Source: Neoechinorhynchus agilis (Eukaryota > Animalia > Acanthocephala). From it: a DNA stretch of 64,000 nt. Below the pieces are notes generated by a model, which was given only the letters and a program-made list of their open reading frames with translations, made no database searches and had not been told where the DNA came from. Shown one piece after another: positions 9,804-47,912 of the stretch; within the stretch, counting starts at the first letter, position 1; every line of letters begins with the position of its first letter. The position numbers were made by a program, and so were the translations under genes. The stretch is taken from the NCBI GenBank assembly GCA_051530055.1, contig CM121341.1, positions 11,696,784 to 11,760,783 of the forward strand. Direction: 5' to 3'.

Positions 9804-9804
9804 G

Positions 9805-20361: not shown

Positions 20362-20917
20362 CTTAAAGTTCTAGGTTAAAGAAACTGATAAAAGCGAAGA
20401 AACCCCCATTAAAAATTTGTTCTGAGGAGACTATTGAGGCAACGGGTGAATCATTTTAATTTTAAATAGGGCTGTCATCTCACTACAAACGATGTGAATT
20501 GTTAAGCGAAGTGTACTATAGCGGTAGAATATTATTGATAGTCCAGTAAGCGATAGAACGGGGGGGGCTTCGGGAGCCCTTGCTCACGTGAGCGAGATTA
20601 TCAATTAGGGATAATAATCACGTGCAGTGTTCAATGATATGAATGCTTTATAGCTGATAATAAGCGTTACTGTCACGCGAAATTAGTTAATTATGAAATT
20701 AATAGAAAGTTTAAATGCGATTAATTTCTTTGAATTCTTTTTAATGGTCCATCGATCAATAAAAAATAACCCTAGCCTTGTTGAACTATGAAATCAAGTT
20801 TTATATTTCTGTTTTTTTTAATTAGAAAATGAATTTTATTTAGGTTTTATTTGATTTTTTTTAACGCGTGACAAACAAGAGTTTAAACTGCGCGATCTTA
20901 GCAATCGGCATTGAGCG

Positions 20918-21560
20918 ATGTCTTATCGAACGGATTCCGAGGTAACAGTAGTAAAATACCATCGAAAAGATGTTGCAAACAAACGTGAGCCTCCTAATAT
21001 AATAAATTTCAATCAAAGTATCAATGGAACAGTGGCAAGCAATTTTAATCGAGGACCACGTAACATATTTCTTGAATCACCTGCGTCTTGCTATCCCGTT
21101 GATATTTATGGCAGATGCCGATTGAATGGAACGGGAGGTAGCAGATACTGCAATAATCAATTAAAAACGAGTTCAAACGTCGACTGCAACGAGGTGGCTC
21201 AGAAATACAAGTTTTATTTAGCCGTGGAGAATAGCCTCGGTTGTCAGGTATTTGTCTGTGGTTATGAGTGCAACAGAAGACGATTTCGATATGCTGGCAA
21301 TTCCGAAATCGTATTTGCGTGCAGAATCTGCAGACGGGTTCAAAGATCTTGCATCAAGACTGACTTTGTTGAGCCGTAACTATGATGAGTACTTGAAGTA
21401 TTTTGAATGGATGAAGGAATTTTCTGTTGGAAGCGACTATGGACATTGGTGCAAACTGTGCACTCGACTCAACGGTAGAAGTTCTAACAATGATTTGACT
21501 TATAGGAAATGTCTGAAATTTAACGAATGGTTTAATTCGTGGCCTGGAATCTACTTTTAA
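20918..21560 (+). pseudogene. GT10 fucosyltransferase fragment, copy 2
   Basis: Translation identical to 2833-3475. Confidence 0.75.
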
Positions 21561-23074
21561 ACCAAAAAAGGCTTTATTTAAAAACAGAAAGTAACCCTGC
21601 GATTTTGTTTTTATTAAGACCGAAATAGTTTCCGCAATTGAAACGGAACGCAATCCAGTTGGGTTTAAAAGAAGCTTTTATAATGCACCTTACTTGAGTA
21701 CATTATTTCTTCGTCGTTATATTATCCAGTATTTCAAAATAACTGCTGCGCCCGAGATCAATAAATGTTGAACTCTCCAAACGGCTATGCTGACTGCTAC
21801 GTATTTTGTCGAACCTTTGAATTGTGATCTAAGAACTATGACGATTCAATCGAAAAGTTTGATCGTTTTAGTTGGAAAGCATTCTAAAGTTGACTAACTT
21901 ACCTGTAAAAAGTAGAACTGAGAAACAAATAATTTTATCGTATAGTTAAGTAATGTATTGCAAAAACATTCTATAATCTAGGAAAAAGTAGTCGCTCAAA
22001 ACTGTTATTAGCTAATTATTATGAAGAAATCAAAGATTTTAGTCTTCAGTGAGTTAATAACTACCATTTCTGGAAATTTATGATAGGACAGAACTCGTAG
22101 AACCTGACGAAATACGATTGCTATGTGCTTTTCCAAAATGTTCAAATTTTTCCTTTTGTAAACAATTACCTCGCAACTTTACGACCATTTAATAAATAAC
22201 GAGGGAGGCTCACTATCAATGTAAGCATCTTCCCTGTCTCGATGCATTAATTCACAATAATCCAATCGCTCGTCTCTAACGATCTCAATATAATTTACAT
22301 CAGGTTCCTTACAACCCATAAACAATTCATACATTTACTTTTTTAGCAAATTATAATAATTGATTTATTTATTTGATAATTTTCGGCCTTCGCGTAGGCC
22401 TTCTTCAATCCATTGTTTTTGGAGAAAAATTTGAGTAAGGCTTCTAACGATCCTTCATCTTTTTCGTCGTTCTCATACGATCCCAATACATTTTCTAGGC
22501 TTATTCCTTGCTATTTGAGGCATTCTTATAACCTTGAAATATATATAAGATCGTTAAATTCGCTAATAATGAAATCAGACATCGTAGCAGCAGTCATTCT
22601 CGGTTGCTTTTTTCACTTTGAAATTATATGCTCTTCAAATGACAAAGGATCGCGTCCTCGTATTTTATTTTCATTAAAAGATCCTTCACTAAATGCATTG
22701 TGCATTGTTGCGAATCGTCTTTTCTTTAATAAAATCACACGTACATGCAGTTCACTGTTGTTTAGTCTATTTTTATTAAATCATTTGAAATGGAAGCAAA
22801 AAAGAGATTATTCTAAGCGGATTTCGGTCCCTCAAAGCGACGCCAATATTTGAGAAGGCGTGAGGTTATGATGATAGGCACTAGTAAGATTCTACAAACA
22901 AATTCGTTAGTCAGCCGATTAACTAGACCATTGTACATGTCAAACAGTTTCACAATATCTGAAAGCTATATAAATTTGTAAAAATTCAAATAAAAAATAA
23001 ATTCAAAATCTTGTGAAATACTACTTGATTTTCCAGCCGCATGATAAATCAAGTTTAATTTTTAAATTGACACA

Positions 23075-24805
23075 TGGGCGTCGCCGTCTTACGGCTTTCT
23101 CAGGGATCTTCAAAGGCTCGTGGAGATGTGACGTGTGCTAAAGTAGCGACACCGAAGCGGAAAGTTCGTCCCACTTTGTTGAGCAGTTCTAGGGCTTTGT
23201 CTAGCAAATGTCCAGAACTGTCCCTCGCATTGTCTACGGAAACGCCATCCCTTCCACTTTTAGCTGCCCGGGATATAAGTAGTGCTTACGTGCTAGATAA
23301 TTCCACCCGTGGTCCTTGCCCGAGAGGTTTACTTTGGCGTCGCTTCGGCACTCGGATTCATGCTTTTTCCATGGCATGACCATGATTTTGCGTCCTGATT
23401 CAATCTACCGCGAACGTGTTCCGTCAAACATTGACGCTAAGGCCGTTCAGTTTTGCTTGTCTATAGATTAACTCGTGAATGCCATCGGCCAAACATCGTT
23501 CGTAGGTCATTCCATAGACCAAGTTTCTCCAAATGCAAATCGAATCTTGTCTTTCATTTGTTTCCATAGACATAAGGGACAACGCTCGACGTATTTAAGG
23601 CGTTTAATGATGTCCAGTTCTCGCCAGGATTCTCCTAAGTGTGATCGCGCTTCTATGGACAACACTGGCATCTACTCGCGATCATAGCATCAGCTTTCAA
23701 ACGTTACTGGTGAGACTTTCACTGTTATATGGGATCTTGAGAATCGGGCTTCCTGCATATCGTTTCGTCGAACGATCATCGTTCAGGTTCATCTCTCTTG
23801 AATCATAGCGCTGTTGGAACCGCATTATCTCGTTACTTGAATATCCATCAACAGCGAAAATTGCCAAAACGTTTTTCCGTTAACGACGGTAAGCAAACCA
23901 GTGCTGTCTCGTGCATCTCAGCATAAATTGCCAGTTTCATCACCCAAGGATGATGGGAATCTCGATGCATGACTATCCTTTTACGGTTTGCGATACCAAC
24001 CGAAATCAGTGACTTGATTAACTTTTTAGCACAAATTGATGAAAGGCAGATAATCCGATGGTTTGCCCCGAATCACCTTAATATCACTAGTAAAATCCAT
24101 AGAACTAAACCTATTCTAAACGTCATCTATCTCACAATATTCTCTGTAGGTGAACAGCACATCGTCCACATAGCGGAGAGGCCGCGGTTCGATTTCGAGA
24201 TGTGAGTGGTCGCAATTCCTAAAGCTGATAACTACACCGATAAACGTTTGTTCCAGGTGCGGGAGGGTATGGAATTTCTCACGAATTGTTCAAGGATCAA
24301 AAACTTAAATGGAATATAAATCGAGTTGAAAAAGACGCATTTGTACAGGCGAAAAGCAGATTAAGGGAAATGTAGATTCATACTTCATTGAGTGACAAAG
24401 ACGGTGACCTAAATTCGATCTATAAAGGCGCAGAAGAGATAATGATAGAGGAATTAATGCGAGATCGGACCACATATATACATATATATGAAGGAATCGT
24501 AGGATGATTGTGAATTGAAGCAAAAAGTTGAATAGCATCTTTCATGAAGTGATAGCCGCAAGAGAGTTGAAAAGAATGAGTAGATTCGTGCATGGACCAT
24601 TGCTGGTGCCCGTGATGTATCGAATGGTCAAAATGCACAAGATACTGGTCGGTCCAGCATCTTTGATTAGATGCAGTACAAATTATTTCGGCAGTCAATG
24701 GACCTGCGTACTGATTATCTCGCTTCTTGTCGATGGCGATTAGCCCACTGCTTCAGAAAACGATTGCTTATTTACGGAATGTAGAAGGCTCACTTAATTC
24801 TCTGA
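23075..24805. mobile_element. Degenerate Penelope-like element; copy 2
   Basis: Duplicate of 4990-6720. Confidence 0.75.
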
Positions 24806-25901
24806 ATGCACGATGCAATGACTAAAATGGTAGTACACTTTACTCGGGAGAGTTATCAAAATCTGCAACATTGATCATGAGAGAATCCTGGAAATCGATA
24901 ATATCAAGTGCCAACTCGCCCCGTTGGTTGGGCACAATAACGGGTCGTACGTTGGTCGTCCCCTCCCAACGATCACTCCGCTCAGTCCCATTTTTCACCT
25001 CCTTCGAGCAAAATAAAACATCAATACATAATTTCATTCTAACCCAGTGATAAAAGTGTTGTCAATGGGGGCACAGAACCTGGGAGTGCAATAACGAAAT
25101 CAAATGTATGTTTTGCTCAGGAGGAGGGCATCAAGGTTTCAGGAGAGTATGCCCTGTCGCTATAAGATATTGGAAAAGTGTCAACAAGGACACATCTTCA
25201 GGGAATGACTGGGTAGGATTTAACTGCATCATCCTCGAACTTATCGACCCTCTTACCCTCATTATAAATCACTGCTTTTTATATGGCATCTACCATTCGT
25301 GCCTGCAATGTTTTGTAAAAACGCACGATCCCTGACCTGGAATTTCTCTGGCTAGAAGGCATCGTTTTAGGAATTTAATATATTCAACTACTCCTATTGT
25401 TTGTTTATGAAGTATTATGACATAGTTGATTCTCCATGAACAGTGACGACAAAAGCAGTGTCCCATTTTCTTGAGGATTGTATTCGCGTGGTTTGATATG
25501 TTGTTATTTTGGTCGATCATAATGCCCAACTGGGGGTATGACGCGTACAGTAGAATTCCTGATTCCACTCACACATCTATTGAGCAATAAAGATAAGGCA
25601 AAATCCAACACAAGGTGGATTTGAAAAGGCGAGATTCATAACCAGCGAACCGGATCTTAGAAGAAGACTGATTCTTGAGGCCATTCACATCCGGGGAAAT
25701 CCGACGATGGAAGGCAAAAAATCAAACCACACGCTGGTGCTACCAAAGTTGCGTAGCATGACGGGCAAATAAATCGGCAACAAACCGCAAGAGGTGTGTG
25801 CGGATGGAACTCCCCACACTTCGGGTATTAGCAAACCCGCGGATCTGAGCTACATCCAGACGTGACCGGCTGTGCATGCTGTCTATGTCCTCCATTTTAG
25901 A

Positions 25902-25941
25902 TAGACTGAAGAGGCAAGGAAAACCTTGCGAAATATTTCTA
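25902..25941 (+). ncRNA. Minimal hammerhead motif, family B; copy 2
   Basis: Identical to 9721-9760. Confidence 0.85.
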
Positions 25942-25985
25942 AAATAAATGAGTAACGAAAACACCGGGGAAAGGATTCGCCAACG

Positions 25986-27624
25986 CATTTAATTTTATGG
26001 ATAGCCGCTTCCGCATATAATTGTGATTTTGTCGTCAATGGCCCAAATATTGATCCTCCTCTAAGGATTCGCTTCGGAACAATTGCGAAATCGTCATTCA
26101 ACCTCTGGATTGACGAATGCGCGCACTCAATAAAAGGCAATCGAAGAATAATGAGAGGCTGCGTAACCGCGCTCTATATTTCAATCATAGTGCGCGTTTC
26201 GCAAACGAAATTTTTAAAGACGCGAAATCATCAAGGCCGAATATTCATCTGCCGACAGCAAGAAAGCATTACGGCGACCTCTCCGAAGGCAACAACCAAC
26301 CGGATTTCACAGAGGAAAACTTACCCGAAGATTCAATTACACTACATAATCTGTCAGTTATAACAAAAGAAGAAATTGGAAATGCAATCCGCGGAACAAA
26401 ACCTAGAAGTGCACATGGACCCGACAAAATATCACTCAGAAACATCAAGGCATTCGATAGGCACCTCGCTGGTTTGACGATACTCTAATTCAATAATGGA
26501 AACAGGGCATCCTCTGAATTAATGGTTAGATAGCAAAACCATTTTATTGCCAAAGAATGGAGCGCGTTCACACATCTCTTCTGACCTGAAAGCATGGCTA
26601 CCAATCACCATTTCATCGATTCTTTTACGAATCTTGCATGGATAGCTCTTGGGGAGGATCAGAACTCTCCTTATCGACACTCGAGGAAGTCGAGCAAATG
26701 TGGAGGACAACATTAAAGAATCTCTTCTTCTTACTCCACTACCTCAACGACGGAGCAATATTCCTCCCACTGAGCAAAGGTAGATTGGGTATTACATCTA
26801 TACAGCAATCCGTTATGGCCGTACGCTTAAAGGCTTGCCTCAGTGCAAAAGAACACTGCCCGAGCCTTGAAACACCAAACGCCTACAACAATACAGTACA
26901 AAAAAATTTTCGGGTCTCGGAGCTACCGAGTATATATTAGCGTCATCGCAAGTAAAAAATCTTAGCACGGAGTCTAATGTGAGGAAATGGATGTAATCTA
27001 AGACCCAATAGCAAGGTATCAAAGCATTCACAAGCTGCAACTTCGTAGGCAAGACAATCACAAGCATTCCTCCGAATTGATAAAAGTGCGATTTCAACTT
27101 CTCGAATTCGGCTCTCATCTAACGACAATTGAGCACAACAGAACAAGAAAATGTCGCCAGTGCACTATCCGAGACGCAGAACCAAAAACTACATCCACGA
27201 TCCTAAACTGCAGCTCTATAAACCAGATGCCAAGAGGCGTACACGCAAGAGCAGAGGAAATTATGAGTGCAGAGAAGAAGTACCGAGTAATATCAGAAGA
27301 CGTACCATGAATGCTCGGGTTCTGTAATCGCCGCATCAATACAATGGGCTTTGCTGTCGGCTCAAGATGAACCTATTCAATGGAATTAATCACGCGGCTC
27401 AAAAATTTTTATTTGTCAATTAACACCGCATTGAATATAGCAACAATTGCAGTAAAGATTACCTTTCATGTCTTTATGAATAGAGAAAGGACTCGGTAAC
27501 AATTCAACGGTACTCGAACAAAAAAGAAAACAAAACAATGGAACTTATCCAAAAGAAGAAAATGACACTGAGTGAAAAACTCTAAACTATGTAAGAATTT
27601 CCACCTCCAAAATAAATGATCATA
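25986..27624 (+). mobile_element. Truncated R2 retrotransposon; copy 2
   Basis: Duplicate of 9805-11443; abuts the 28S site at 27625. Confidence 0.85.
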
Positions 27625-28701
27625 TAGCCAAATGCCTCGTCATCTAACTAGTGACGTTCATGAATGGATTATTGAGAATCCTACTGTCCCTGTCTGCAGC
27701 CTAGCGAAACCAAAGCCAAGGGAACGGGCTCGGAGAGTAACAGCGGCGAAAAAAGATATTGTTGAGCTTGACTCTAGTCAGTCTCTGTGAAATAACATGA
27801 TAGGCGTAGAATAGATGGGGGCCCGCCGCGGTGAAATACCACTACCATCATTGTTTCTTATTTACTCAGTGATTCAGGGAGCATTAATTCGCTAATTGCG
27901 ATATCTATTCCTTTCTTAAGTGTCGAAGAGTGTCTGGTCTGAGAACACAGACTGATTGGGAGTTTGGAATTATTGTTTAGGGCTTAACCCGGTAAGTTAT
28001 TTTTTTGCTAAGGACGTTTCAAACCTCGTGGGTTCATCATCTGTTTGTTAGCTAGTAATAAACGATGAACCCGACGAGGGTTTGCTAGTTAGTAATAGAC
28101 GATGAACCTAATGAGGGTTTGTTAGCTAGTAATAGACCATGAACCCGACGAGGTTAATAACACGTTTTTTTAATTAACAAAGAGATGGACAAATGTATCT
28201 TTGGGTCCTCTAACTTTGGGTCAACGTCTTTAATAAAAAATCATTTACCAGGTGAAGACCTAAAGAGTAATTCCTATCATATACCACGGTACCTCACATA
28301 TCGACTATTGGGAGTGTGATTAGGGCGGTACATCTGTTAAAACCTAACGCAGTCAGAAAAATTATCACGGGGATAACTGGGTTGTGGCGGCCAAGCGTCC
28401 ACAGCGACGTCGCTTTTTGATCCTTCGATGTCGGCTTTTCCTATCATTGGGATGCAAAAAGTCCCATAGCGTTGGATTGTTCACCCATTAATAGGGAACG
28501 TGAGCTAGGTTTAGACCGCCGCGAAACAGGTTAGTTATACCCTACTGTTGAGCTGGTTGTTGTAATAGCAATCTTGCTAATTAAGAAAAGAACCGCAGGT
28601 TTGGACATTAAGTACACTCACTCGGTCGAGAGGCCGATGTTGCGAAGCTTCGTCAGCAGGATTACGACTGAACACCTCTAAGTCGGAAGTCTACTTAGGA
28701 G
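27625..28701 (+). rRNA. 28S: 28S rRNA 3' fragment (pseudogene); copy 2
   Basis: Duplicate of 11444-12520. Confidence 0.92.
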
Positions 28702-29617
28702 CAACAACACCAATGCGCACTAGGCGGCCTGAACTTGTTACAAATGTGATAGTGAGCGACGTTTTCTACGCGGAAATTACGTTTCTTCTCAATGATTTAT
28801 CCGCCAGCGGCGAATTTATCATCTGCGCTCAGTGTCTACTTATGAAATGAATTGACCTGCGTAGTTGGTAGCCGTGTTCAATACCTCGCTGTACTTGTGC
28901 GTTAGCATATGATGTGTGCTATGATGTGCCGGTATAAAATTAAGTCTCATGACGTATGCAAAGTTGGGCAAAATGTGTGTTTTCGACAAATTTTTGCGAG
29001 CCCCCTGATAAGGGCTAGGCACAACACCTAAGCTATAACGCGAAGAAGTGCATCTTGATTACGCCATGCAAAGCTCTCTGAGCTGGCAGAGAAGATTGCG
29101 GTAGTGGTTGTTGATTAAGACGTTCGATGTTAAAACTCATTGAACTATGAGAAGAGTTGGGTATAGACTGAACGGCCGTGCTGTTGGGCGATACAAAAGT
29201 ATCAGGTAAAAAATGTAGTAAAGATAGGCGGATTGAATAAGCGGCAAATACCAATCAATTCACTGATATTATATCAGTGATTGAGCTAAGTGAATGCTGG
29301 GCAAAATTGTTACTTGGCGCTTACGGTTAATCGGCCACTGTTATTGGATTTATGTGATTACTAAAAATTAACGTAGTTGATGTTGAACACCATCCGAGTG
29401 GATGGTTGAGCAGTTAATATTGGCGGCAAATGCCAATTGATGACGTAATGTGCCTTGCACTGTAATGTTGGTAATGCTGAGATGATAAAATTATCTGACC
29501 TACGGGTCAGTTAGAACAGTGGGCGACTCATATAAAAGGCGTAAACGGATGTTGATTATTTTTCTTAGTAGAAGTTGAGGCGATTGTTTTGCGGGCGTTA
29601 TATCACCTACCTAAACA

Positions 29618-30670
29618 TCCATTGATCTCATCTGTTCAAGGGCCTCTGAACTTTTCCCTCACGATGCTCTCTTCCTTTTAAAAAATTGCATCTTCATTCC
29701 ACGCATCCTCCATAAACTGCGGTCAACCCCTTCCTTTCAATGTCAGCCCGAATTGAGAGAGATTGATGGTTCTTTAAGGGATGGTCTATGTAAGATCCTT
29801 AATATTAAGCTCCCCGACACTGGCTGGACCCAGGCATCTTTGCCCACAAGCTACGGAGGGATCGGTATTCGGGCGAGCTCAGCCATTGCGCTTACAGCCT
29901 TTCTATCGTCTCTTAGTAGGTCCAAGCGCCTTTCCAGATTGATTTTGAGACATAATTTTGAGGAGGACATCAGCCTGGAGCCCGCTCTTCATCTTTGGAT
30001 GTCCCTGTCTAACCTCGACAAGATTCCAGACCTCCCGGAAAAACAGAAATCGTGGGACATTCCGTTAGTGGAGCGTGTTCACACCTCACTTTTTGACTCG
30101 CTCTCCGACGTGGATAGAACGCGATTAACTGCAGTTTACTGCAAAGAGTCCGGCGCCTGGTTGAAAGCTGTGCCATCAGCAAATCTCGGTTCGAGATTAG
30201 ATGGCGAGGCTCTCAGAATCGCAGTGTCTCTGAGGCTCGGGCTCCCGATGGGCGTAGGCCGGATGGAGTTACCGTTTTTCCTTGGAGCAGGGGGAGATGT
30301 CTCCTATGGGACGCAACATGCGTCGACTCCCTTGCAGCCAGCAATCTGCGAGATGCATCCTCCGGGGCTGGGGGAGCCGCATCAGCAGCTGAGCTCCGTA
30401 AGGTTGCAAAATACGCTGATTTTACGAATTCTCATCATTCTGTCCCCTTCGCAGTGGAAACCTTACGAGATTTCGGACGTGCGGCGAGGAGTTTTGTTTT
30501 CGAACTGGGGCATCGACTGATCAACTCGACCAATGACAGGAGGGCTCGTTCGTTCCTAGTGCAGAACATATCCTTGGCTATCCAGCGAGGAAACGCAGCG
30601 AGCGTCTTGGGGACGGTGAAGTACGATTGAGAATAATATCGAATGTTACATTCGGATTTTTTACAAAAAA
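29618..30670 (+). mobile_element. 5'-truncated CRE-clade-like non-LTR fragment (post-RT region + restriction-like endonuclease)
   Basis: ASLPTSYGGIGIR, ALRIAVSLRLG; in a shifted frame RRPDG..WSRGRCLLWDAT, PFAVET, ISLAIQRGNAASVLGT. Short A tail; absent from unit 1 (ctaaaca|ataattc). Confidence 0.8.
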
Positions 30671-31294
30671 ATAATTCTAATCAAATTCCCCGGTACCTTA
30701 CACATCGACATTGTTATATCACCTGTTTTTTGTAGCAGGGTTCAAAACCTGGGTATACATGAGATGGCTGCTCCGCCTGCCGTCGTTTCGCCGATGCCTG
30801 CACTGGCTTTTGCCATGCTGAGCTCGTCTAATTAAGACGAAATAGACATTGTGTTATAATGTATGGACATAAGAGTTGAAATTAACCAATTGTTGATTTC
30901 TCGGCGGAGCTTCGTTGATATTGGAAATAATTACGTCACAGAAGATGATGTTAATTATTGGCTGATGATTGGTTTTAACCATCAAAATTAAATTCGGGTT
31001 AGTTGTTGGACATAAGGTCCGCAATAATTGGAAGAATTGTCGGGAAGTATCAGTGGGTTGTTATTATTCGACCTCCACATGGTTGTGGACGGTAGCAATG
31101 ACGTTAGTTTTTGTTACCATGATTTAGGTTGAGAGTTGCATTCGTGTAGTAGGATGTGTTATTGTTAAGGTTGTTTGTCGAAACCTGAGGAAGATCGATA
31201 AAGACAAATATATTTCAACAACCTAAGCAATAACTTACAATGATTTGGTTCACGGGTGCGTTACTCTTGCCGCGGTTAAACACACTATCCTAGG

Positions 31295-31684
31295 CACTCA
31301 GGTTTACGGGTCGACGTAAGGAATAAGCAGCTGGTTAGTGCAGAAACTTTCGCAACGATACCATTAGCCTCCGTTCCTGTATCGATCGAAGCCCTCAGCG
31401 TCGATTTCCTCGGATCGAAGAACGACGAATTTAATAAAATTCTCGCAGATTTCCCCTATATAACGAGACCTACCTTTTCGGACGTTTCGACCAAACATGC
31501 AGTGGAGCACATTATTGAGACACAAGGACAACCACTCCATGCTAGACCGCGACGCCTGCCACCCGATAAACTCGCTATTACTAAATCCGAATTCAAAAAT
31601 ATGGAGGATCTTGGAATCATTAGACGCTCAAATAGCCAGTGGTCGTCTCCGTTGCATCTCGTACCCAAATCAGGCGGTTCTTGA
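31295..31684 (+). mobile_element. Ty3/Gypsy pol fragment; copy 3
   Basis: Same translation as copies 1 and 2. Confidence 0.85.
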
Positions 31685-31804
31685 AAGGCTCCATAACGTG
31701 TAGTATCCGTGATTTATTTAGGTTACCCTTCAACAATTTCTCACACAATCACACAGGCCCACACACAATAAGATGAACATTAAAGCACAGAATTGGAAAC
31801 AAGC

Positions 31805-33569
31805 TCAAATAGCACTGCCTTGATTGCTCCGGGAATTTACAGTAATGTCCCCCTCCATGGACGACTTCTCTACAAACTCATAATTCTTGCTTTCTTCAGA
31901 ACTTTTGTCTTTTTTATAATTATCTGTACATTGTTCGTTTTCTCCATTTTCCAAATGTTCCAAGTTATCTGCACTTTGCGAACTTTCCTGGTTCACACAC
32001 TCTGCTCTATTTGACTTCTTAGCACTTCTGCAATTTTCCTTAGATTCGGGGGCAACCGGATCCTGGTAAATGATTTCATAAAACAAAATGTACCCAGTAA
32101 AAACACGCCTCTTACTCTTTCGAGCAGCTGGATTCATAGGTGGATTAACTACCGCAACTCCATTTGAGAGAACAAATGGTGCAGACAGCAAAGCATCCTC
32201 CGTTTTCTCCGTCGTCGCCTTTTCCTCCTTAACCTCATCTACTCCATAAAACTCCTCAAACACATTTCCATTGATGTCTTTGACTGATGCATCGTCGAGT
32301 ATAACCCATTTGTAATCATTGTATGTCTTTGTCACCGATGATTCCGCGGGCTCCTGCGGTTCAGTGATATCCTTGCGGATCACCGTTATGAAATGTCCAG
32401 TGTTGTGGTTTGCTCCGCAGTGTACAATAAAACATCGAAGACGGTAACGTGCGTTATTCACATCGAGTTCAATGGAAAGTGGAACCTTCGCGCATACTTT
32501 TGTGTAAGTAAAATTTTCTTCTTCTTCGACGCATTTGAACCTTTTCAGGTGAAGGATTAGAATTCTGGGACATTTGTCAATCACAATCCGCATCGATTGT
32601 TCATTATGTGTCCAGCAATTGGTACAAAAGTATCGACTATCTGACTCAAGAATAGCAGGAGTGCTGAAGTGTCTCAGGCACTGTTCAACCGTACGACCGG
32701 CTTCTATTAAATTATTTCTGGCATTTTTAAATCAGGTATCAGTATAAGTAAACCAATTTTACAGAAATATAAATCATAATGTTGCTATTCTCATATTCTT
32801 ACCAGTGTGCTTCAGCGCCTCACCCCTTCTTGTACCAGAAACAATTCCAGACGTCAAGTGATACGTCGTAAAATATTTCCGATTGTTTGGATCCATTATG
32901 ACAGAGAATGCAACTCGTCTTGTGAAGCAATGTTCCCATGAAGATGTCACCAACTATGCATTTTTTCGTAATTTCATCCTGAAGGGTGTCAGCACAAATG
33001 TTTATGAGATAATTCAGAAATTCATGGGCATCGTGTTGGTACGGTCCCTTAAAACTACTTCCATTACTTTGAACCTCGTTAATAAACTTCTTTGGTTTGA
33101 CTGCAGGTAGGTGGTTATTTCTCCTAAGAATTCTCCGTTTTCTACCAGGTTCCAAAAGCTCTTCGAAAACTTTCCCCAGGTGATATACTAATGCCGCTCC
33201 TCTGACATTTTCATTACCCGGTGGAGAATTCCTTCGTTCGTTCGCTTGGCTACGAGCTAAATGTTCTTGTAGGAATTGAACACGGAATTCATCGCAGTGA
33301 AACAAAGCTTGTATCACCGCATTGCAATAGCAAGTATTTCCGAAATTAACAAGTCCTCTTGTAGGTATCGATGGCGTTGATGAGCCCGTTGCAGATGAAT
33401 CCGAGCTAGATGATTCGATCTGCTCAGAATCTCTCCGCTTTTTTCCTAACACACCCCAGTTTGCAAATTGGCGTTCTACTTTTCGACCCTGCGTTTCTAA
33501 CCATTTCTTGATTTCTGCACCTTTTCCCTGACATTGTTTGATGGTTTTCGACTTTCTGACAAATCCCAT
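31805..33569 (-). CDS. USP12/46: USP12/USP46-family deubiquitinase, intact 2-exon model (33569-32824, 32717-31805; 552 aa)
   Basis: Donor GG|GTGAGG and acceptor gccag|A bound a 106-bp intron and join ...SLDVWNCFWYKKG to NNLIEAGRTVEQCL with no stop. Catalytic Cys, His and Asp (ILDDA) and the CILC/CTNC zinc pairs are present. Confidence 0.8.
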
Positions 33570-33977
33570 CTTAAAGTTCTAGGTAAAAGAAACTGATAAA
33601 AGCGAAGAAACCCCCGTTAAAAATTTGTTCTGAGGAGACTATTGAGGCAACGGGTGAATCATTTTAATTTTAAATAGGGCTGTCATCTCACTACAAACGA
33701 TGTGAATTGTTAAGCGAAGTGTACTATAGCGGTAGAATATTATTGATAGTCCAGTAAGCGATAGAACCTGGGTGTTTTGGGGATCAATAAAAAAATACCT
33801 TATCTCTGGCTTTAAAAGATTGAATTTTTTAAACCAAATTTTATATCAAATAATATTTATTGCGTATTTAAAATCGCTTTTGCTTAAGTATCCGAGAGTT
33901 GATGTCATTTTTAATATATAAAAATTTATCTGCAGAAGTCAATACAATTCCTAAAGTATTCAATCTTTTAAGAATAT

Positions 33978-34167
33978 AAAAATGTTGATATGTGAGGTAC
34001 CGGGGAATTAGATTGGAAGGATTTAGGTCTACACCCGGTAAATTATTATTTATTAAAGACGTTTCGAACCTCGTCGGGACTTGTATTTCAGAACTGATGA
34101 TAAACCCGACGAGGTTCGAAACGTCTTTAATAAATAATATTTTACCGGGTGTAGACCTAAACAATAA
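33978..34167. mobile_element. Palindromic PLE-derived mini-element, family D
   Basis: 57-bp arms at 34022-34078 and 34105-34161, 39-nt one-sided tail at 33983-34021, 12-bp TSD TTTTAAGAATAT (33966-33977, 34168-34179). Confidence 0.85.
34091..34128 (+). ncRNA. Minimal hammerhead motif, family D
   Basis: gaa-CUGAUGA-U-AAACC-cgacga-GGUUC-GAAA-CG-UC/uuu; ACGU palindromic stem III, GUC triplet; one stem II mismatch. Confidence 0.7.
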
Positions 34168-34423
34168 TTTTAAGAATATGTCTAAATATTTCTAACCGAT
34201 AATTTTTTATGTTGTTAGAGTTCTATGATTGCAGATCATAAAGCAAAACTTAGGATACACAATTTCACTACATGAAATAGCATTCGGGTAGATCTGAGCT
34301 GCCATATTTTGGGTATTTTATTGGTCAATAAATGCTCGCAACGATTCGGTCATAAATATTATAAGAAAAATATCTATTGATGATTGTTTGATTGACAATT
34401 TGACTGAAAGAGAGTTTATTGAA

Positions 34424-34462
34424 ACACCTAGCTTTCGCCGTCCAACGGCTTCTTCAGGGTGT
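34424..34462 (-). ncRNA. Minimal hammerhead motif, family A (left arm)
   Basis: Exact reverse complement of 34650-34688. Confidence 0.85.
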
Positions 34463-34649
34463 AATCTACAATGCGAGTGAAGTGGAGTGGAAGTTCACAT
34501 TAGATTCATGATTGCAGACAACTCATCCTTCTGGTTAATGAGTGTCCTCGATGCTCGGACGGTAGGACACTCATTAACCAGAAGGATGAGTTGTCTGCAA
34601 TCATGAATCTAATGTGAACTTCCACTCCACTTCACTCGCATTGTAGATT

Positions 34650-34688
34650 ACACCCTGAAGAAGCCGTTGGACGGCGAAAGCTAGGTGT
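34650..34688 (+). ncRNA. Minimal hammerhead motif, family A (right arm)
   Basis: ACACC-CUGAAGA-A-GCCGU-ugg-ACGGC-GAAA-GC-UA/GGUGU; AGCU palindromic stem III. Confidence 0.85.
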
Positions 34689-35509
34689 TTCAATAAACTC
34701 TCTTTCAGTCGGATTGTCAATCAAACAATCATCAATAGATAAAACATGCGACTGAACAACCAAGCAGCGCTTAGTAATCCCATAAGAAAAATACAATAAT
34801 CGGTATTCTCGCGAAAATCGAAATGCATAGTTGAGAATTATCGTCAAATTTAAACAATCACATTGTTGTTATTTTGCAGGCGATAAAAAAGTTTGCTTTG
34901 ATGTAATCAAAAAAGCGAGATTAAAATGTGGCGCTCAACTTGGAAAATTATAGTAAACTTTATAAATGTGAAAACCAGACTTTTGAGGTAATCTAAACTC
35001 ATAAATGTATAATTTCTCAGATTTCTACATAAAAGAAAAGCATTAAATTTTTGAATCTTTGTCATATACAAAAAATCATAGTAAAAATTGTAAGAAAATA
35101 CAATGCTGCAATTATTTTATAATGAAGTTTAAGACCTACGTTAGAGAGCGCATTTTATTTTTATTTATCTAGAGTTCATTGAGCATGTCGATTGAAAAAT
35201 CATTAGTCAATTTTTTGACAAGCCCTTCGATCTATAAGTGTTTTTGTACGTTAAAAAACAAATTACACGTGAAAAATATGGGTAGTCTTGCGCCTTATAA
35301 AAACGCTTGAATTAGGTCTTTAGAAATTTTCTCCAAGATTAGGATTTTTGATAATTTAATTGGCTGAATTATAAGGATATTAATATGCAATAAATAGTTT
35401 TTGCATACTATAACAAGATTATCTATAGTTCTTATAGGTATTTTTGAATTATGATAAAAGATTTAAATTAAATAACATCGAGATTTAATCTTGGTGACGG
35501 GGTGCGAAA

Positions 35510-36975
35510 TAAAATTTAAGAGGTGTGAGTTTTAAAGAATTAATTATGTCGCAATCAAATTCAATTTATTTACAAAATTAGCATTTATTTTTTATTGACG
35601 TAAAATCTCTTCGTATATCTCACACCAGTGTAAAACCGCACAATTTTTAATAGAATAAAAAATGCCACAACTAAGAAACATGGATTAAATTTGCCTCTAA
35701 AACTTTAACCCCTTTAAACTTCTACAAGCAAAAAAAGGAGTGCACGGTGAACTCAGTAACTTTAAAGAATCAATTTTACGCCCTTTTTACAAACAAAAGA
35801 TTTTTTTCTCTGGAGAAAATTTAAGAGGTGTGAGTTTTAAAGAATTAATTATGTCGCAATCAAATTCAATTTATTTACAAAATTAGCATTTATTTTTTAT
35901 TGACGTAAAATCTCTTCGTATATCTCACATCAGTGTAAAACCGCACAATTTTTAATAGAATAAAAAATGCCACAACTAAGAAACATGGATTAATTTTGCC
36001 TCTAAAACTTTAACCCCTTTGAACTTCTACAAGCAAAAAAAGGAGTGCACGGTGAACTCAGTAACTTTAAAGAATCAATTTTACGCCCTTTTTACAAACA
36101 AAAGATTTTTTTCTCTGGAGAAAATTTAAGAGGTGTGAGTTTTAAAGAATTATTTATGTCGCAATCAAATTTAATTTATTTACAAAATTAGCATTTATTT
36201 TTTATTGACGTAAAATCTCTTCGTATATCTCACATCAGTGTAAAACCGCACAAATTTTAATAGAATAAAAAATGCCACAACTAAAAAACATGGATTAATT
36301 TTGCCTCTAAAACTTTAACCCCTTTGAACTTCTACAAGCAAAAAAAGGAGTGCACGGTGAACTCAGTAACTTTAAAGAATCAATTTTACGCCGTTTTTAC
36401 AGACAATAGATTTTTTTCTCTGGAGAAAATTTAAGAGGTGTGAGTTTTAAAGAATTAATTATGTCGCAATCAAATTCAATTTATTTACAAAATTAGCATT
36501 TATTTTTTATTGACGTAAAATCTCTTCGTATATCTCACATCAGTGTAAAACCGCACAATTTTTAATAGAATACAAAATGCCACAACTAAGAAACATGGAT
36601 TAATTTTGCCTCTAAAACTTTAACCCCTTTGAACTTCTACAAACAAAAAAGGAGTGCACGGTGAACTCAGTAACTTTAAAGAATCAATTTTACGCCGTTT
36701 TTACAGACAATAGATTTTTTTCTCTGGAGAAAATTTAAGAGATGTGAGTTTTAAAGAATTAATTATGTCGCAGTCAAATTCAATTTATTTACAAAATTAG
36801 CATTTATTTTTTATTGACGTAAAATCTCTTCGTATATCTCACATCAGTGTAAAACCGCACAATTTTTAATAGAATAAAAAATGCCACAACTAAGAAACAT
36901 GAATTAATTTTGCCTCTAAAACTTTAACCCCTTTGAACTTCTACAAGCAAAAAAAGGAGTGCACGGTGAACTCAG
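35510..36975. repeat. 305-bp AT-rich tandem repeat, about 4.8 copies
   Basis: Anchor ttaaga recurs with periods 305, 305, 305 and 304; few substitutions. Confidence 0.97.
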
Positions 36976-37250
36976 CAACGCCTCTTTAAAGAATTTACAA
37001 ACAAAACATTTTTTATCGCTTGAACGAATTTAATATAAAATCTCAGATTGGAACATCAGGGACTAAACAGCTTATTCCACATTACAACGACTGCGAAGCT
37101 TTGGATTTTTTCACTACATGTAAGAATAGTGCGTATTCATCGCTCGTAATCTCTACACGTTTTATAATTTTGATTCTTTCGAGCATGCTTCTAATCTTCA
37201 CTACAAATCAAATTTTTGTTTCCAATTAAGTGCAGGGGTTCATCAATGAT

Positions 37251-37359
37251 CGTTTAGGTCTACAACCGCGATAAATGATTATTTATTAAATACGTCTTGG
37301 ATCTTCGTCGGGTTCATCATCAGTTTGTCACATTCCCCGGTACCTCACATATCGACATT
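37251..37359. mobile_element. Family D mini-element with one arm deleted
   Basis: Left arm (degenerate antisense hammerhead) joined directly to tail attccccggtacctcacatatcgaca; 12-bp TSD TTCATCAATGAT (37239-37250, 37360-37371). Confidence 0.8.
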
Positions 37360-38639
37360 TTCATCAATGATGCTTTGCCTTGAGTATCGGTTGTTTCAAT
37401 TGCTCACTCGATCGTCGTTAGTGATATTTTTATGTTGATATCGTCATCTGAGCTATTTACTCTCGAAATGAACTCAATTCTTTATGTTGCGAGTCGGTTA
37501 CATTTATTCTCGAAATTTTGAAGCAAATATCCATTGGACGGCTGATATTTTTTGCCCGACTTCCTTAATCGTTGAACTTTTTGTCTGTTTAATTGCGCGG
37601 AACATTGTTGTTAAAGAAACTAATCGTAAGGTTGAATTATTCATTTTTTTGTATGGCGGAAAATTGAAGGAATTTAAAAGTTACAACCTAATAGAAAGGT
37701 ATACAAGAATGCGTCTCTGAAATATCGGACTTAATAAATTTCTTCAATTTTATCGTATTTTGACCATACGCTAAAAACGGTTTCGAGTTGTTGCTATCTC
37801 CTACAAAAAGCACCGCATTTTCCACAAATTTACTTCATGATCGATGAGGACATTGAGACTGATCAATGTTGTTATTACATTTCTGATGCTCAATGGGACG
37901 TCATCTTACCCCTTACATAAATGAGATTGCAATTGTCAAACATGTTCGCACGCGCAGTGACTCTTACAACCCATTACGGAAACACATCAATACCCATGTT
38001 TTGGCAAGGAGACGATTGCTACCATTTGAATGTCATGCAAATCAGCTCTATTTGCGGTACCAACACTACTAAAAAGTTTTCTTGGTGATGAAAAGAATAG
38101 AGATTGATTTATTAATTCCCAATATTTGGTCCGTCTCTTGTCGGACTTCTTCAGGTTGCTTAGCAGGTTTTTAATCCCCAAATCTCTATTCCTCTCATCA
38201 AAAAACAAAATACATATGAAAAGGTGTTTGTATGTGGCGTAAAAATTAAAAGAATTTATTGATTCCAATATTTCAAAGCCACAATCTTGTACCTATAATA
38301 TTTCGGTACAATATTGTGCCTTTATCAAGGCTGTAAAAAGTGTTTTATTCGCACAAAACAACTTACAGCCTTGATAAAGGTACAAGATTGTGCCTAGGAA
38401 ATACTGGAATCAATAAATTATTTTTAATTTTTACGCCAGATGCAAACATGAACAATTCGATCTTCAAACATATAAAAAGGTTTTGTGCATGGCCTTCTAT
38501 GGATACAGCATAACTATACGGGACAATTCCTCCAAGCGAATAAAAGTAGTTCAATTTTATTCATCTCTCCCTCATCAAAACAAACTATGGACAACATATT
38601 TACTACTTACAATGTCGCAGTTATTCCGTTAATTTGCAG

Positions 38640-43629: not shown

Positions 43630-44160
43630 TCCTCGTGAGCACTCGAGTTCTGATTTGTCAAACGAATGCGGTTGCTTATTTCGAAGAGGATTACGGGTTC
43701 GGTCGGGTGCGGGTATCCGGTCGGGGAATACCTGTTCGTATGTCAATATCCGGCCGGGGGATGTCCGCTGGGGTGGTAATTGGTGGTTATTGTTTGAGGG
43801 ATATTTATTTGATTTTGGTTGGTTAATTGTTAGTCGCTGTTGTCTTCCGCTTTTTCCTCCGAATCAATTCGCATTTGGAGGATTGAGCAGTGGGGAAGAA
43901 GGAGCGGAGGTAGAGATTTGTGCGAGGAACTCAAGGGTTGAAAATTTTGGGGCGACGTAAGTGTTTTAAGTATGAGTAAAAGGAGAAATCTGTGGTAGAA
44001 ATTGAAGAGGAGGAAGAGAATGAAAGCGCTTTGAGTCCTTTTGAAAGATTAGAGCGAGAGGTGTATTTCTAAGGGCAGGAGTTCGGAGGAGCAGATTAGA
44101 GCGCACCTCTTGTGAAATGTATTAAGTTTTTTGAATAGTTTAGAAGCCATAAGATCATGC
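43630..44160 (-). mobile_element. 3' fragment of CR1/L2-like LINE
   Basis: LNTFHKRCALIC matches other copies (FHKRAAKLC, FYKRAAKIC); ends with family terminal motif gaactcgagtgct(c/t)a(c/t)gaggac, also at about 39328 and 58270. Confidence 0.7.
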
Positions 44161-44163
44161 GCA

Positions 44164-44471
44164 ACGCGACTGTTGGTCAATTCATTCTGTCGCGATCGCA
44201 ACGTTGATAACAGCTCATCAGTATTACTCACAAATGCCCGTGTCCTCCGTAGCAATGGACCGATAGCCGAAGCCAGGAAACTAGAAACACGGTACGCTGG
44301 TCCATTAACCGCAGATATGATTGGTCTGCATTTCAGCAATGAGGCTGCTTGCGGTGTAACCGGACCAATAGGCATCTTGTGTGTCTTGACCAATCCGTAC
44401 ATCACCGGTGTACGTAATGGACCGTGTGTGAAACTGCTCATCCCTTTCAACTCTCGAGCCGATATCACTTT
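44164..44471 (-). repeat. 308-bp inverted copy of PLE-internal 44929-45236
   Basis: Reverse-complement match; ORF 44049-44468(-) repeats an internal peptide of the main ORF with one substitution. Confidence 0.95.
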
Positions 44472-46782
44472 CCAACTACGGGTAAAAGCTGTTCGTGATG
44501 GGGAACGTCTGGTTGCTGCAGAGGCTAATGCACCGCCTAGTTGTGAACCTGAGTGTGTCTCGCGATCTCGACCGCGTTTTGATTTCGAAAGGAATGCATT
44601 CGCAGTACCGAGAGCTGATGATCACACAGAGAGAAAATTGTTGATGTTGCGAGAGGGCATAGAAAACTTGACGGATCGTTATATGGATTACCGCTCGAAA
44701 CCGAATCTTCCGTTGAGTGAACGACGAGCACTGAGGTCTCTGAAAGAGAAAGTGCAAAAGAAGGAGATGAGGATAACAGTGAGCGATAATGCAGGTGATC
44801 TCGTGGCGATGGAAAGCAGCGTGGAAAGTGCGATGATGGGGACGTTATTGGGTCACACTGATACATATACAATGGCGACAAAAGACGAATGTGAGCAACA
44901 GCGCAAGGAGTTGAATGCTGCTCTTCGAAAAGTGATATCGGCTCGAGAGTTGAAAGGGATGAGCAGTTTCACACACGGTCCATTACGTACGCCGGTGATG
45001 TACGGATTGGTCAAGACACACAAGATGCCTATTGGTCCGGTTACACCGCAAGCAGCCTCATTGCTGAAATGCAGACCAATCATATCTGCGGTTAATGGAC
45101 CAGCGTACCGTGTTTCTCGTTTCCTGGCTTCGGCTATCGGTCCATTGCTACGGAGGACACGGGCATTTGTGAGTAATACTGATGAGCTGTTATCAACGTT
45201 GCGATCGCGACAGAATGAATTGACCAACAGTCGCGTAATGTCTTTTGATTTCGTGGCATTGTACACCAATGTGGACAACGAGGGAGCAGTACGTGCGCTG
45301 GAGAAAAGGTTGAAGGAGAATGAAGATCTTGACCTCTTTGGTCTACTACCAGACGATGTTATTGGTCTGACACGATTGGTATTGAAGTGCAACCTTTTTC
45401 GTTATCGAAACCAGCTATATAAGCAAGTTCTTGGTCTCGCAATGGGAAATAGTTTGGCTCCGGTATTGGCCATCCTCTACCTCGATGACCTGGAAAGACT
45501 GCACATCTATCCACATTTAGCGTCGAGTCAAGTTTACCTCCGCTATGTGGACGATGTGTTGCTGACCTTCACCGAGGATGATGAGGTCGATACCATTGAG
45601 TCACTATTAAATTCAATGGACTCGAATAGGAGGATTCAAGTTACAAGAGACCAACCTTCGGACTACCTGCCATTCCTCAATCTCCGCTTCAAATCCGACG
45701 ATGTGTCCAACTTCAATTGGTATCGAAAGCCATGCAGGAAGTCGATTGTGATGCACCGAGATTCTCACCATCCTTGGGCGATGAAAGCGGCGATATACGC
45801 TGGTATGCATAAATCGGCAACCACCTGCTCATCGTCGTGGGACGCGAAGCGTGGAGCGGTGGAAGCAGTAAACAAGATCTTCGCGGACAACGGATATTCG
45901 ACAGAGGAGATCGAAGGATTCCAGCGAGAAGTGGAAAATAGAATTAGACGAGACGCTGGACCCATGAGGGAACGAAAGGACGATAGGCCGATCCTACGAA
46001 TTCCGTACGTGAGTGAAATGTTCACGAAGAGAGTTAAAGTACTGCTCAGGCAAGCAGGGTTGAATGTGCGTATTGTGCACAGAGGGTGTAGAACGCTGCG
46101 GAGGATGCTGACGAGAACGAGCCATCATGAGGATCATCAGGAATGCCCTCGGTCGTGCCTAATGTGCAGATACGCAGCAGGTGCGAGGATGGACGAGGAG
46201 CGTCAGCAAGCCATTGATCGTGACTGGAAGATGTGCGATCAGAGCAGTGTGGTATTCGAGATCCGGTGTGAACGGTGTCGGATTGACCGTGGCCACTTGG
46301 TCACGTACGTGGGAAAAACAGAAAGGCCACTTCGCCAAAGAGTGGCCGAGCATGTACGAAACTCGTTGAACCCAAGTGCGCAATCGTATGTGACGACACC
46401 GTGGGCGAAACATTATTCGCGAGTCCACCCGGATGGAACAGTTCAGCTGTCCACGCGCATAATGTACAAAGCGCAGGATCCCGTCGAACTGTCGATAGCG
46501 GAAGCGCTGATCATATCCCGAGAGACCCGGGATCGTGAGGACTCTAGCGGGCATCGGTCGGACGGTAGGACACTCATTAACCAGAAGGATGAGTTGTCTG
46601 CAATCATGAATCTAATGTGAACTTCCACTCCACTTCACTCGCATTGTAGATTACACCCTGAAGAAGCCGTTGGACGGCGAAAGCTAGGTGTTTCAATAAA
46701 CTCTCTTTCAGTCGGATTGTCAATCAAACAATCATCAATAGATAAAACATGCGACTGAACAACCAAGCAGCGCTTAGTAATC
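44472..46782 (+). mobile_element. Penelope-like retroelement, family A, 5'-truncated, open RT + GIY-YIG ORF ending at 46620
   Basis: CRPIISAVNGP, SFDFVALYTNV, GLAMGNSLAP, YLRYVDD, LPFLNL, WYRKP, Cys-rich linker, VFEIRC..YVGKTERPLRQRVAEH; no stops. Confidence 0.93.
46653..46691 (+). ncRNA. Minimal hammerhead motif in the PLE-A 3' UTR
   Basis: Same as 34650-34688; predicted cleavage 46686/46687; AATAAA immediately downstream. Confidence 0.85.
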
Positions 46783-47499
46783 TTATATTTTTCTCATTGG
46801 TACGAGATATTTCACGAGGAAGCCTCGCCTATGGAAAAATATACATTTTAATCGGGATTGTGATCACCACATCTCCGACTCTATCGTTCCGAAGATTTTT
46901 ATCCGGATGATTAAGGACAAAGTATATTCGCTGTAAAAGAAAAAAAGTCCGGGAATAATGCACCTCGCTGAGAATCCGCTAATCTTAGATCGATTTTCAG
47001 AATTTACCCTTAGTAACGTGTGTTTGTGTCATAATGAATCAAAGAAAATTGTTCCTATTTACATATTTTTCGATCAATATTCTAGTGTTGGCTATTATTC
47101 AATATCATTTTCAAACCCTTGCTATGACGTTTAATAAGTTTTCGCACATAGAAAACTCAGCTTTAGTCTCGAAGGACAGGAGATCGTTAGTATAGACGTC
47201 GTTTTCGCTTAAATATTGTATTGTATTTCTCAAAGAGATTGAGGAGATCGCGTTATTCAGCTTTAAATTAAAAAAAAATATTTTATTAAATCTTGAACTT
47301 TTATACTTCCAATTCAGATGATCAACGCTCCTATTAATCGGCGCTGGCCAAAATGCTGGCCGCATTGCCCCGCTGCACCGCAATGCTTATTTTTTGCGCC
47401 AAGAACGAAGTCGATCTTGGCTCTCCAGTCGCCGCGGTTTGTGAATATAATCTATTTTACCTTTTGTTCGCCTCTTCAGATTGTCGTGAATTTTTACAG

Positions 47500-47872: not shown

Positions 47873-47912
47873 GAGAAATATTTCTCAAGGTTTTCCTTGC
47901 CTCTTCAGTCTA
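47873..47912 (-). ncRNA. Minimal hammerhead motif, family B, with a stem II mismatch
   Basis: uaga-CUGAAGA-G-GCAAGG-aaaa-CCUUGA-GAAA-UAUU/ucuc. Confidence 0.7.

Follow-up and report, generated by a model that had tools for sequence, protein, structure and literature searches.

Insertions of Penelope-like elements (PLEs) are highly 5'-truncated, often lie next to an inverted 5'-truncated copy, and often carry a tail of 30-40 bp at one end only (Craig et al. 2021, PMC8557442). Penelope elements of Adineta vaga show an inverted pseudo-long terminal repeat (pLTR) and a one-sided tail of 31 bp; their target-site duplications (TSDs) measure 8-10 bp, the inverted junction contains palindromes, and solo-pLTR structures that have TSDs also occur (Arkhipova et al. 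2013, PMC3846280). A purified PLE protein from Anolis cuts each of the two target strands and extends it; reverse transcription begins at two neighboring internal positions, the stretch between them forming the tail, the hammerhead ribozyme is dispensable for insertion in vitro, and the protein is predicted to be a dimer (Frangieh et al. 2024, PMC11167929). In Schistosoma, minimal hammerheads occur as dual motifs, one on each strand and separated by 100-700 bp (Cervera & de la Pena 2014, PMC4209133). Here, we analyzed a 64,000-nucleotide stretch of the acanthocephalan Neoechinorhynchus agilis (assembly GCA_051530055.1, contig CM121341.1, positions 11,696,784 to 11,760,783 of the forward strand; hereafter the window, with position 1 at its first letter) that contains four palindromic insertions (ins1 to ins4), an inverted dimer, and a simple insertion, all with PLE-type 3' ends and all flanked by short direct repeats. 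The palindromes are most likely the known PLE insertion architecture reduced to its two 3' ends.

Features in common with canonical endonuclease-containing PLE insertions are the extreme 5' truncation, the head-to-head copy, the 30-40-bp tail at one end, the short TSDs, the hammerhead in the terminal repeat, and the palindromic or short junctions (Evgen'ev & Arkhipova 2005; Arkhipova 2006; Arkhipova et al. 2013; Craig et al. 2021). The insertions described here differ in that both copies are cut to 27-227 nt and only two 3' ends are left; in addition, the TSD is uniformly 12 bp, whereas in A. vaga it is 8-10 bp or absent, and neither a direct pLTR pair nor a full-length tandem occurs within the window. 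The Poseidon PLE of Anolis is alike in that two starts of reverse transcription tens of nucleotides apart define the tail, in that both strands are cleaved and extended, predicting head-to-head products, and in its AT-rich targets. The in vitro work on that element recovered no complete joined insertions or defined TSD, whereas here each inverted event consists of one distal and one proximal end. Twin priming of L1 elements offers a further parallel, since the second nicked strand there reportedly also primes reverse transcription, with the cDNAs joined head-to-head and a TSD flanking the product. In L1, however, the second priming takes place internally on the same RNA and yields an inversion with no duplication, whereas both primings here would fall in the 3' region and the arms are duplicates. 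The dual hammerheads of Schistosoma mansoni likewise form opposite-strand type I pairs, are attributed to truncated PLEs, and have the bulged nucleotide after A9, the G10.1-C11.1 pair, and the palindromic positions 15.2-16.2, but TSDs, tails, and palindromic anatomy are not described in that paper (PMC4209133). Non-long terminal repeat (non-LTR) retrozymes and hammerhead satellites are also noncoding, PLE derived, and equipped with type I hammerheads (de la Pena et al. 2020; bioRxiv 10.64898/2026.07.22.740005), but they consist of direct tandem repeats with at least two sense ribozymes per transcript and give circular RNAs, whereas the copies in the window are inverted, with one sense motif per strand that would be buried in a hairpin.

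Two neighboring insertions, ins1 and ins2, occupy positions 33966-34793, and both are near-perfect palindromes. Ins2 (34373-34781; 409 bp) has inverted arms of 178 nt at 34371-34548 and 34564-34741, which are 99% identical and separated by 15 nt, and it lies between exact copies of the 12-mer ATAAGAAAAATA at 34361-34372 and 34782-34793. Its plus-sense part (34555-34781) comprises the tailed arm (34555-34741), with an intact minimal hammerhead at 34650-34688, and a 40-nt tail (34742-34781). Positions 34555-34779 are identical (225/225; 100%) to 46558-46782, the 3' end of an element 12 kb away that encodes a reverse transcriptase (RT) and a putative GIY-YIG endonuclease, which bears out the preliminary description of the arms as PLE-type 3' ends. 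The homology breaks off at about 46782-46784, beyond which both copies have unrelated flanks, and this identifies the tail as the element's true 3' terminus. The other arm, tail-less and inverted (34373-34554, minus strand), begins 40-42 nt further inside the element; it follows the parent from 46742 down to 46567 and, after a 10-nt gap, from 46556 to 46551, is 98.9% identical to the reverse complement of 46567-46744 by BLAST, and contains an intact minimal hammerhead at 34424-34462 on the minus strand. At the junction, read by eye, 34549-34554 (cgatgc) is the reverse complement of 46551-46556; the tail-less arm thus appears to reach 7 nt beyond the tailed arm, with a 10-nt slip. Relative to the parent, the tail-less left arm carries GG>AA (sense) at 34398-34399, and the left arm of ins3 has a single G>A at 54298; all arm-to-arm differences in these two insertions are G>A in the sense orientation (C>T on the cDNA strand), too few for a deamination signature.

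The source-type element of this family (family C; 44164-46784, plus strand) has a PLE open reading frame (ORF), a minimal hammerhead at 46653-46691, a proximal end position at about 46742, and a distal one at about 46784. The ORF (44131-46620; 829 codons) matches the RVT_1 domain at amino acids 348-491 with an E value of 8.9e-6, under the Pfam cutoff, and its best match in the protein collection is an RT-containing protein of 802 amino acids (29% identity across 644 amino acids). At its C terminus lies a GIY-YIG-type motif, YVGKTERPLRQRVAEH, and VTYVGKTERPLRQRVAEH aligns with YIGMTTRRLHVRAREH of the homologue; the Pfam GIY-YIG match is subthreshold (E = 0.1). This large copy is itself 5'-truncated, with protein homology beginning at codon 160, and is capped by a 308-nt inverted segment from inside the ORF (44164-44471, the reverse complement of 44929-45236, 99% identical, with 457 nt between); the ORF stays open across the inverted piece by chance. 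No upstream direct repeat of the 3' end, i.e., no direct pLTR pair, was found at 44164-46784, and no TSD was found for this copy or for the copies of a further family, B.

Ins1, a member of family D, spans 33978-34167 (190 bp), with 57-nt inverted arms at 34022-34078 and 34105-34161 that are identical at 56/57 positions (98%) and 26 nt apart. The exact 12-mer TTTTAAGAATAT abuts the PLE homology on both sides, at 33966-33977 and 34168-34179. The tail (33978-34021, minus strand) is the distal 3' terminus of family D, ending like the copies at 13468 and 37251 (...CCCCGGTACCTCACATATCRACATT), with the canonical CAATAATTCTAATAA replaced by a 12-nt stretch at 34010-34021. The tailed arm (34022-34078, minus strand) is 5'-truncated within helix II of the hammerhead and lacks the CUGAUGA box, whereas the tail-less arm (34079-34167, plus strand; 89 nt) extends 26 nt further 5' and includes a near-canonical minimal hammerhead at 34094-34125 (CTGATGA...GAAACGTC) with an A.C pair at 10.1-11.1. 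This arm terminates in ...CCTAAACAATAA, about 38 nt before the family D 3' end. The 26-nt spacer contains CTGATGA in the sense of the tail-less arm, the sense having been assigned through homology with the 37251 and ins4 copies.

The remaining insertions repeat this anatomy with variations. Ins3 (family E; 54211-54461, or 54198-54474 with its TSDs of 12 or 13 bp) consists of a 22-nt tail (54211-54232) and arm (54233-54343) in minus sense, a spacer (54344-54354), and a tail-less arm (54355-54461) in plus sense, the arms being 111 nt long and 99% identical. Its plus strand has an intact hammerhead at 54387-54418, whereas the motif on the minus strand has a single mismatch, in helix II. The spacer could be assigned to neither arm, since the window contains no family E parent and an E-like copy at 4150-4500 is too diverged to serve as one. 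Ins4 (family A, related to D; 11786-12125), between ATTGGGAGTTTG duplications at 11774-11785 and 12126-12137, has a tail-less inverted arm at about 11786-11870, three 37-nt tandem repeats, and a plus-sense arm with a 42-nt tail ending at 12125; a TAGCTA palindrome lies at the junction. It sits in a degenerate pseudogene fragment of the 28S rRNA 3' region and is seen again at 27967-28306 (27955-28318 with TSDs) through a segmental duplication with an offset of 16,181 bp. Its arms are only about 77-80% alike over the shared 50 nt (our count from the alignment) although the TSD is still 12/12, which suggests that two different RNA templates may have been used. The two family D relatives had been described as truncated. 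This holds for the first, a noninverted insertion of 51 nt of 3' end at 13468-13518 (plus strand; 13456-13530 with its GTTATATCACCT duplications), which ends in ...CCCCGGTACCTTACATATCGACATT. The second (37251-37359; 37239-37371 with its TTCATCAATGAT duplications) is instead an inverted dimer, in which an 82-nt tail-less arm in minus sense (37251-37332) is joined to a 27-28-nt plus-sense copy made up of the tail only (37332/3-37359); its two arms have no sequence in common.

Exact 12-bp direct repeats (12 or 13 bp at ins3) flank all six independent sites once some end coordinates are corrected, in agreement with the preliminary description, and of the only 10 pairs of exact 12-13-nt direct repeats that lie 40-600 nt from each other in the window, 7 are these TSDs, against a chance expectation of about two such pairs by our own estimate under uniform composition. 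The host sequence of ins4 serves as an empty-site control: the 28S rRNA consensus reads ...GGGAGUUUGG-CUGGGGCGGCACAUCUGUUAAA, and after the second ATTGGGAGTTTG in the window the text attagggcggtacatctgttaaaa resumes exactly where the first copy stops. No paralogous empty sites are available for ins1 and ins2; the third of the local segmental copies already stops at about 33780, ahead of both. The palindromic insertions are confirmed as real and nonrandom.

Each of the five inverted events has exactly one tail, of 22-42 nt, the restriction of the tail to one arm agreeing with the preliminary description, and the ends fall at two discrete positions. In family C, these are 46742 and about 46784. 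In families D and A (D/A), the tail-less arms of ins1, ins4, and the 37251 dimer end inside an 8-nt zone 35-41 nt before ...ATATCGACATT in the alignment and are all 82-89 nt long, and the plain 3' end at 13468-13518 has its end point in common with the tailed arms of ins1 and ins4. The central junctions of the three D/A inverted copies are all different, and therefore these copies were made de novo rather than copied from one palindromic master; within the window, this comparison speaks against amplification of a unit with a fixed spacer. None of the palindromes reappears between new flanks in the window, the only repeat being the segmental duplicate that shares its flanks, and scans of metagenome contigs with exact patterns from the hammerhead of family C and the tail of family D found no other copies. 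Although the sample is small, these observations favor de novo formation of the palindromes. The families, which had been taken to be three unrelated ones, have more in common than that: A (11786) and D (33978, 13468, and 37251) are about 82% identical over some 80 nt, and C, E, and B have a common AUUKUAGAU motif upstream of the ribozyme. Three distinct lineages, D/A, C, and E, are nevertheless represented among the palindromes. The D/A and E parents are absent from the window, and the assignment of these families to PLEs is through shared anatomy and the hammerhead only.

For the ribozyme motifs, we used a strict minimal-hammerhead descriptor built from published features (PMC4209133): catalytic boxes, a bulged base after A9, the G10.1-C11.1 pair, palindromic positions 15.2-16.2, and a helix I of ≥3 bp. 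This descriptor gave 6 matches in the window and none in 200 randomized sequences; they fall in ins2 (on either arm), the parent copy of family C, the plus-sense arm of ins3, and family B at 9725 with its duplicate at 25906. At least one feature is broken in ins1, the minus arm of ins3, ins4, 37251, and 47908, the last three being degenerate. Thus the claim of hammerheads on both strands applies to ins2, the only insertion with intact motifs on both; ins3 has one intact motif and ins1 one near-canonical motif, and those of ins4 and 37251 have decayed. No Rfam hammerhead family reached the gathering score in the whole window, or E ≤ 10 in 33900-34900 and 54100-54600, as expected because the motifs lack helix III. 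The only Rfam matches around the palindromes were subthreshold hairpins of plant or animal microRNA (miRNA) families, with E values down to 4e-29 (MIR821) and all below the gathering score; we treated them as structural look-alikes.

The motif is separated from the proximal end position by 42-56 nt and from the distal one by 65-98 nt, so that any insertion longer than about 100 nt includes a hammerhead by default, and judged by this placement, the hammerheads appear to be passive cargo in the palindromes. We also considered, and rejected, hammerhead cleavage as the process that sets the 5' ends of the arms; measured from the predicted cleavage sites, the arms begin 8-135 nt upstream or 30 nt downstream, and in no case at the sites themselves. 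Published minimal hammerheads cleave poorly, and only as dimers or with protein (PMC4209133, PMC11167929), and the dimeric form needs two sense copies (PMC4209133). Because the two motifs of a palindrome lie on opposite strands, a transcript would contain one sense ribozyme and its antisense, and the "twin hammerhead" put forward as a functional unit is not supported. The accompanying suggestion that a long hairpin would mask the ribozyme is supported by structure prediction: the modeled transcripts fold into near-perfect hairpins (minimum free energies of -340, -98, and -182 kcal/mol) with the core fully paired, and such a hairpin would bury the ribozyme. The companion proposal, that these hairpins could supply small RNAs against the parent family, is plausible.

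Several other motifs in the window belong to the same context. A fourth PLE family, B (9725-9756, 25906-25937, and 47881-47908 on the minus strand), has its own minimal hammerhead with helix II GCAAGG/CCUUGC and AUAU at helix III; its copy at 47908 carries C11.1>A. PLE-like coding remnants lie at 48858-49247 (minus strand) and at 5295-6770 (duplicated at 23353-24855), and the remnants in the latter region and in its duplicate appear to be in a head-to-head order. A diverged relative of the ins3 hammerhead at 4278-4325 (minus strand), duplicated at 22363-22410, has U at core position 3 (UUGAAGA) with G8 unchanged; it is thus distinct from the U3-A8 covariant described in Schistosoma and is probably inactive. 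In all four families, AAUAAA (or AAUAUAAA) follows the predicted cleavage site at 4-12 nt and precedes the proximal end position by 30-45 nt, as seen at 34094-34140, 34655-34705, 54387-54435, and 9725-9770; it may be a polyadenylation-type signal or may merely reflect AT-richness.

Any explanation has to account for arms that are PLE 3' ends, a tail that is the true terminus, two discrete end positions, 12-bp TSDs at six sites, and unique central junctions. We consider it probable that each palindrome is a single dead-on-arrival insertion made by the PLE RT/GIY-YIG protein and not an independent element. In such an event, the endonuclease would nick the two target strands 12 bp apart, and each 3'-OH would prime reverse transcription of the element's 3' region, one at the distal site, with the tail included, and the other at the proximal site, without it, 35-42 nt upstream in families C and D/A and about 22 nt upstream in family E. 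Both cDNAs would abort after tens to a few hundred nucleotides and would then be linked head-to-head, probably through one RT jumping from its template to the other cDNA, and repair of the 12-nt stagger would yield the TSD. We infer the priming on both strands by analogy with published in vitro data for a different PLE, and the joining step and the use of one RNA or two are likewise inferred.

The preliminary description went further and proposed a noncoding, MITE-like class (MITE, miniature inverted-repeat transposable element) generated or mobilized by the PLE machinery, of which the stereotyped production, with head-to-head arms, one tail, and a 12-bp TSD, is borne out. Mobilization as a unit would mean that a palindromic master is transcribed and retrotransposed in trans, for which there are precedents: PLE terminal sequences suffice to mobilize unrelated cargo in trans in A. 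vaga (PMC3846280), and nonautonomous PLE derivatives such as the Chlamys MRC1 element and animal retrozymes are known (PMC8557442; de la Pena et al. 2020). If the tailed strand were transcribed, the RNA would, moreover, terminate in the correct region for the start of reverse transcription, and the uniform 82-89 nt of the D/A tail-less arms could hint at a short defined template. We nevertheless regard this as quite improbable, as no palindrome occurs twice in the window except in the segmental duplicate with shared flanks, the three D/A inverted copies have three junctions, ins2 is identical to a neighboring autonomous-type copy, and the two exact-pattern metagenome scans gave no further copies. 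A MITE family consists of many copies of one uniform unit at different sites, whereas each palindrome is unique within the window; MITEs also derive from DNA transposons through terminal inverted repeats, whereas these are retroelement 3' ends of unequal length. That the insertions are class II MITEs or Foldback-type elements merely resembling PLE ends is scarcely credible, even though terminal inverted repeats, a TSD of fixed length, and hairpin-like matches to Rfam miRNA precursor models are what such elements would show. The whole arm is retroelement 3' sequence, identical to an RT-encoding copy, the ends are unequal owing to the one-sided tail, the single-arm copy at 13468 carries the same 12-bp TSD, and no transposase-related sequence is associated with the insertions.

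Snap-back or self-priming, in which one cDNA or antisense template folds back and is copied and a later endonuclease cut leaves the one-sided tail, we hold to be unlikely. Self-priming has been suggested for A. vaga Penelope, given the palindromes at its inverted junctions (PMC3846280), and Craig et al. ascribed the tail to endonuclease-mediated resolution of an intermediate (PMC8557442). It would account for arms of ins1, ins2, and ins3 that stop within 7-26 nt of each other and would fit the short palindrome at the ins4 junction. Simple fold-back copying is excluded for 37251, however, because its arms have no common sequence and neither was copied from the other, and for ins1 because the spacer belongs to the tail-less arm and the tail to the other, so that neither is a pure copy; the divergence between the ins4 arms beside an intact TSD argues in the same direction. 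Fold-back artifacts of assembly or sequencing, or inverted duplications arising by replication error after insertion, are very unlikely. PLE inverted structures are known to trouble assemblies (PMC8557442, PMC3846280), but elements of 109-409 bp are shorter than long reads, and an artifact would yield neither TSDs nor two fixed end positions, let alone exact 12-bp TSDs at the precise ends of PLE homology with family-specific tail asymmetry.

Several points weigh against the single-insertion explanation that we prefer. The copy numbers and the uniqueness of the junctions come from one 64-kb window, and two-strand priming is known in vitro only, for an Anolis element (PMC11167929). The near-equal stops of the arms in ins1, ins2, and ins3 would not be expected of fully independent abortive cDNAs and therefore imply some coupling. 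In ins4, the longer arm is on the tailed side, unlike in ins1, ins2, and 37251; the D/A and E parents lie outside the window, which leaves the assignment of the ins3 spacer without a reference; and the 12-bp TSD differs from the 8-10 bp of A. vaga Penelope. The similar length of the three D/A tail-less arms is left unexplained by the model. Only tentatively, we put forward a further reading, in which the palindromes would be minimal in vivo footprints of an obligately concerted integration at two strands by a dimeric PLE ribonucleoprotein. The sites would then be fixed 12 bp apart, one subunit always using the distal start and the other the proximal one; the proximal-start cDNA would lead, the distal would follow, and a template jump would join them, with a perfect hairpin locus as a by-product that could feed small RNAs against its own family. 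The tail-less arm extends further 5' by 7 nt in ins2, 26 nt in ins1, and >50 nt in 37251.

The surroundings of the insertions are rich in duplications and other repeats. Positions 1-13600 correspond to 18053-30800 and to 31338-33780 in large segmental duplications with 98-100% identity; the offset is 18,052 bp at the left and 16,181 bp further on, with an extra 1.9-kb repeat at 7134-7669/9039-9573, and the third, partial copy contains ubiquitin hydrolase (UCH) ORFs. At 30666, where the 13468 insertion has its paralogue, the 3' flank and TSD are retained but the 5' flank is another one, which places a duplication breakpoint within the PLE fragment. At 13400-13479, a 40-nt tandem duplication (gcgattgttttgcggacgttatatcacctacctaaacaag, twice) covers the left TSD of the 13468 insertion together with its initial 11 nt and therefore arose after the insertion. 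The two degenerate 28S rRNA 3' fragments (11555-12746 and 27736-28927) match only positions 2390-3399 of Rfam LSU_rRNA_eukarya, at about 400 bits, and in both about 130 nt are deleted internally, directly past the site of the PLE insertion; they resemble pieces of a ribosomal DNA (rDNA) pseudogene rather than a functional rDNA unit. In the interval from ins2 to the 37251 dimer, a 305-bp satellite (35511-36979; 4.8 copies, 97% matches), located in a stretch of 31-32% GC, contains no hammerhead boxes and is thus not an obvious retrozyme array. A hairpin-like element of about 200 bp at 38236-38436, with imperfect terminal inverted repeats (GGCGTAAAAATTAAAAG.../...CTTTTAATTTTTACGCC type, 86-91%) and with neither PLE homology nor a 12-bp TSD, may be a genuine MITE. 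Directly right of ins3, diverged long inverted repeats (54505-55101 and 57411-58093; 77-88%, 2.3-3.4 kb apart, with strongly negative GC skew) may be another inverted transposable-element structure. The minus strand at 14628-16952 has a 774-codon ORF with a zinc knuckle, aspartic protease, RT, and RNase H, the pol of a Ty3/gypsy-type LTR retrotransposon unrelated to PLEs, and 58860-63129 on the plus strand contains host gene fragments for THO complex subunit 2 (THOC2), whose best relatives in the protein collection, cnidarian and sponge entries, are only 37-48% identical.

On present evidence, these insertions define neither a new mobile-element class nor a novel role for the hammerhead. Our results present the palindromes as compact records of recent PLE integration (98-99% identity between the arms of ins1 to ins3), in which both ends, both starts of reverse transcription, the TSD, and the junction can be read within <410 bp. 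Structure-based annotation tools would call such hairpins MITEs, and miRNA precursor models score them, although they should be recognized as truncated PLE insertions. A genome-wide tally of these palindromes would test in vivo the two-strand, two-start-site model of 2024 and would give the nick stagger.

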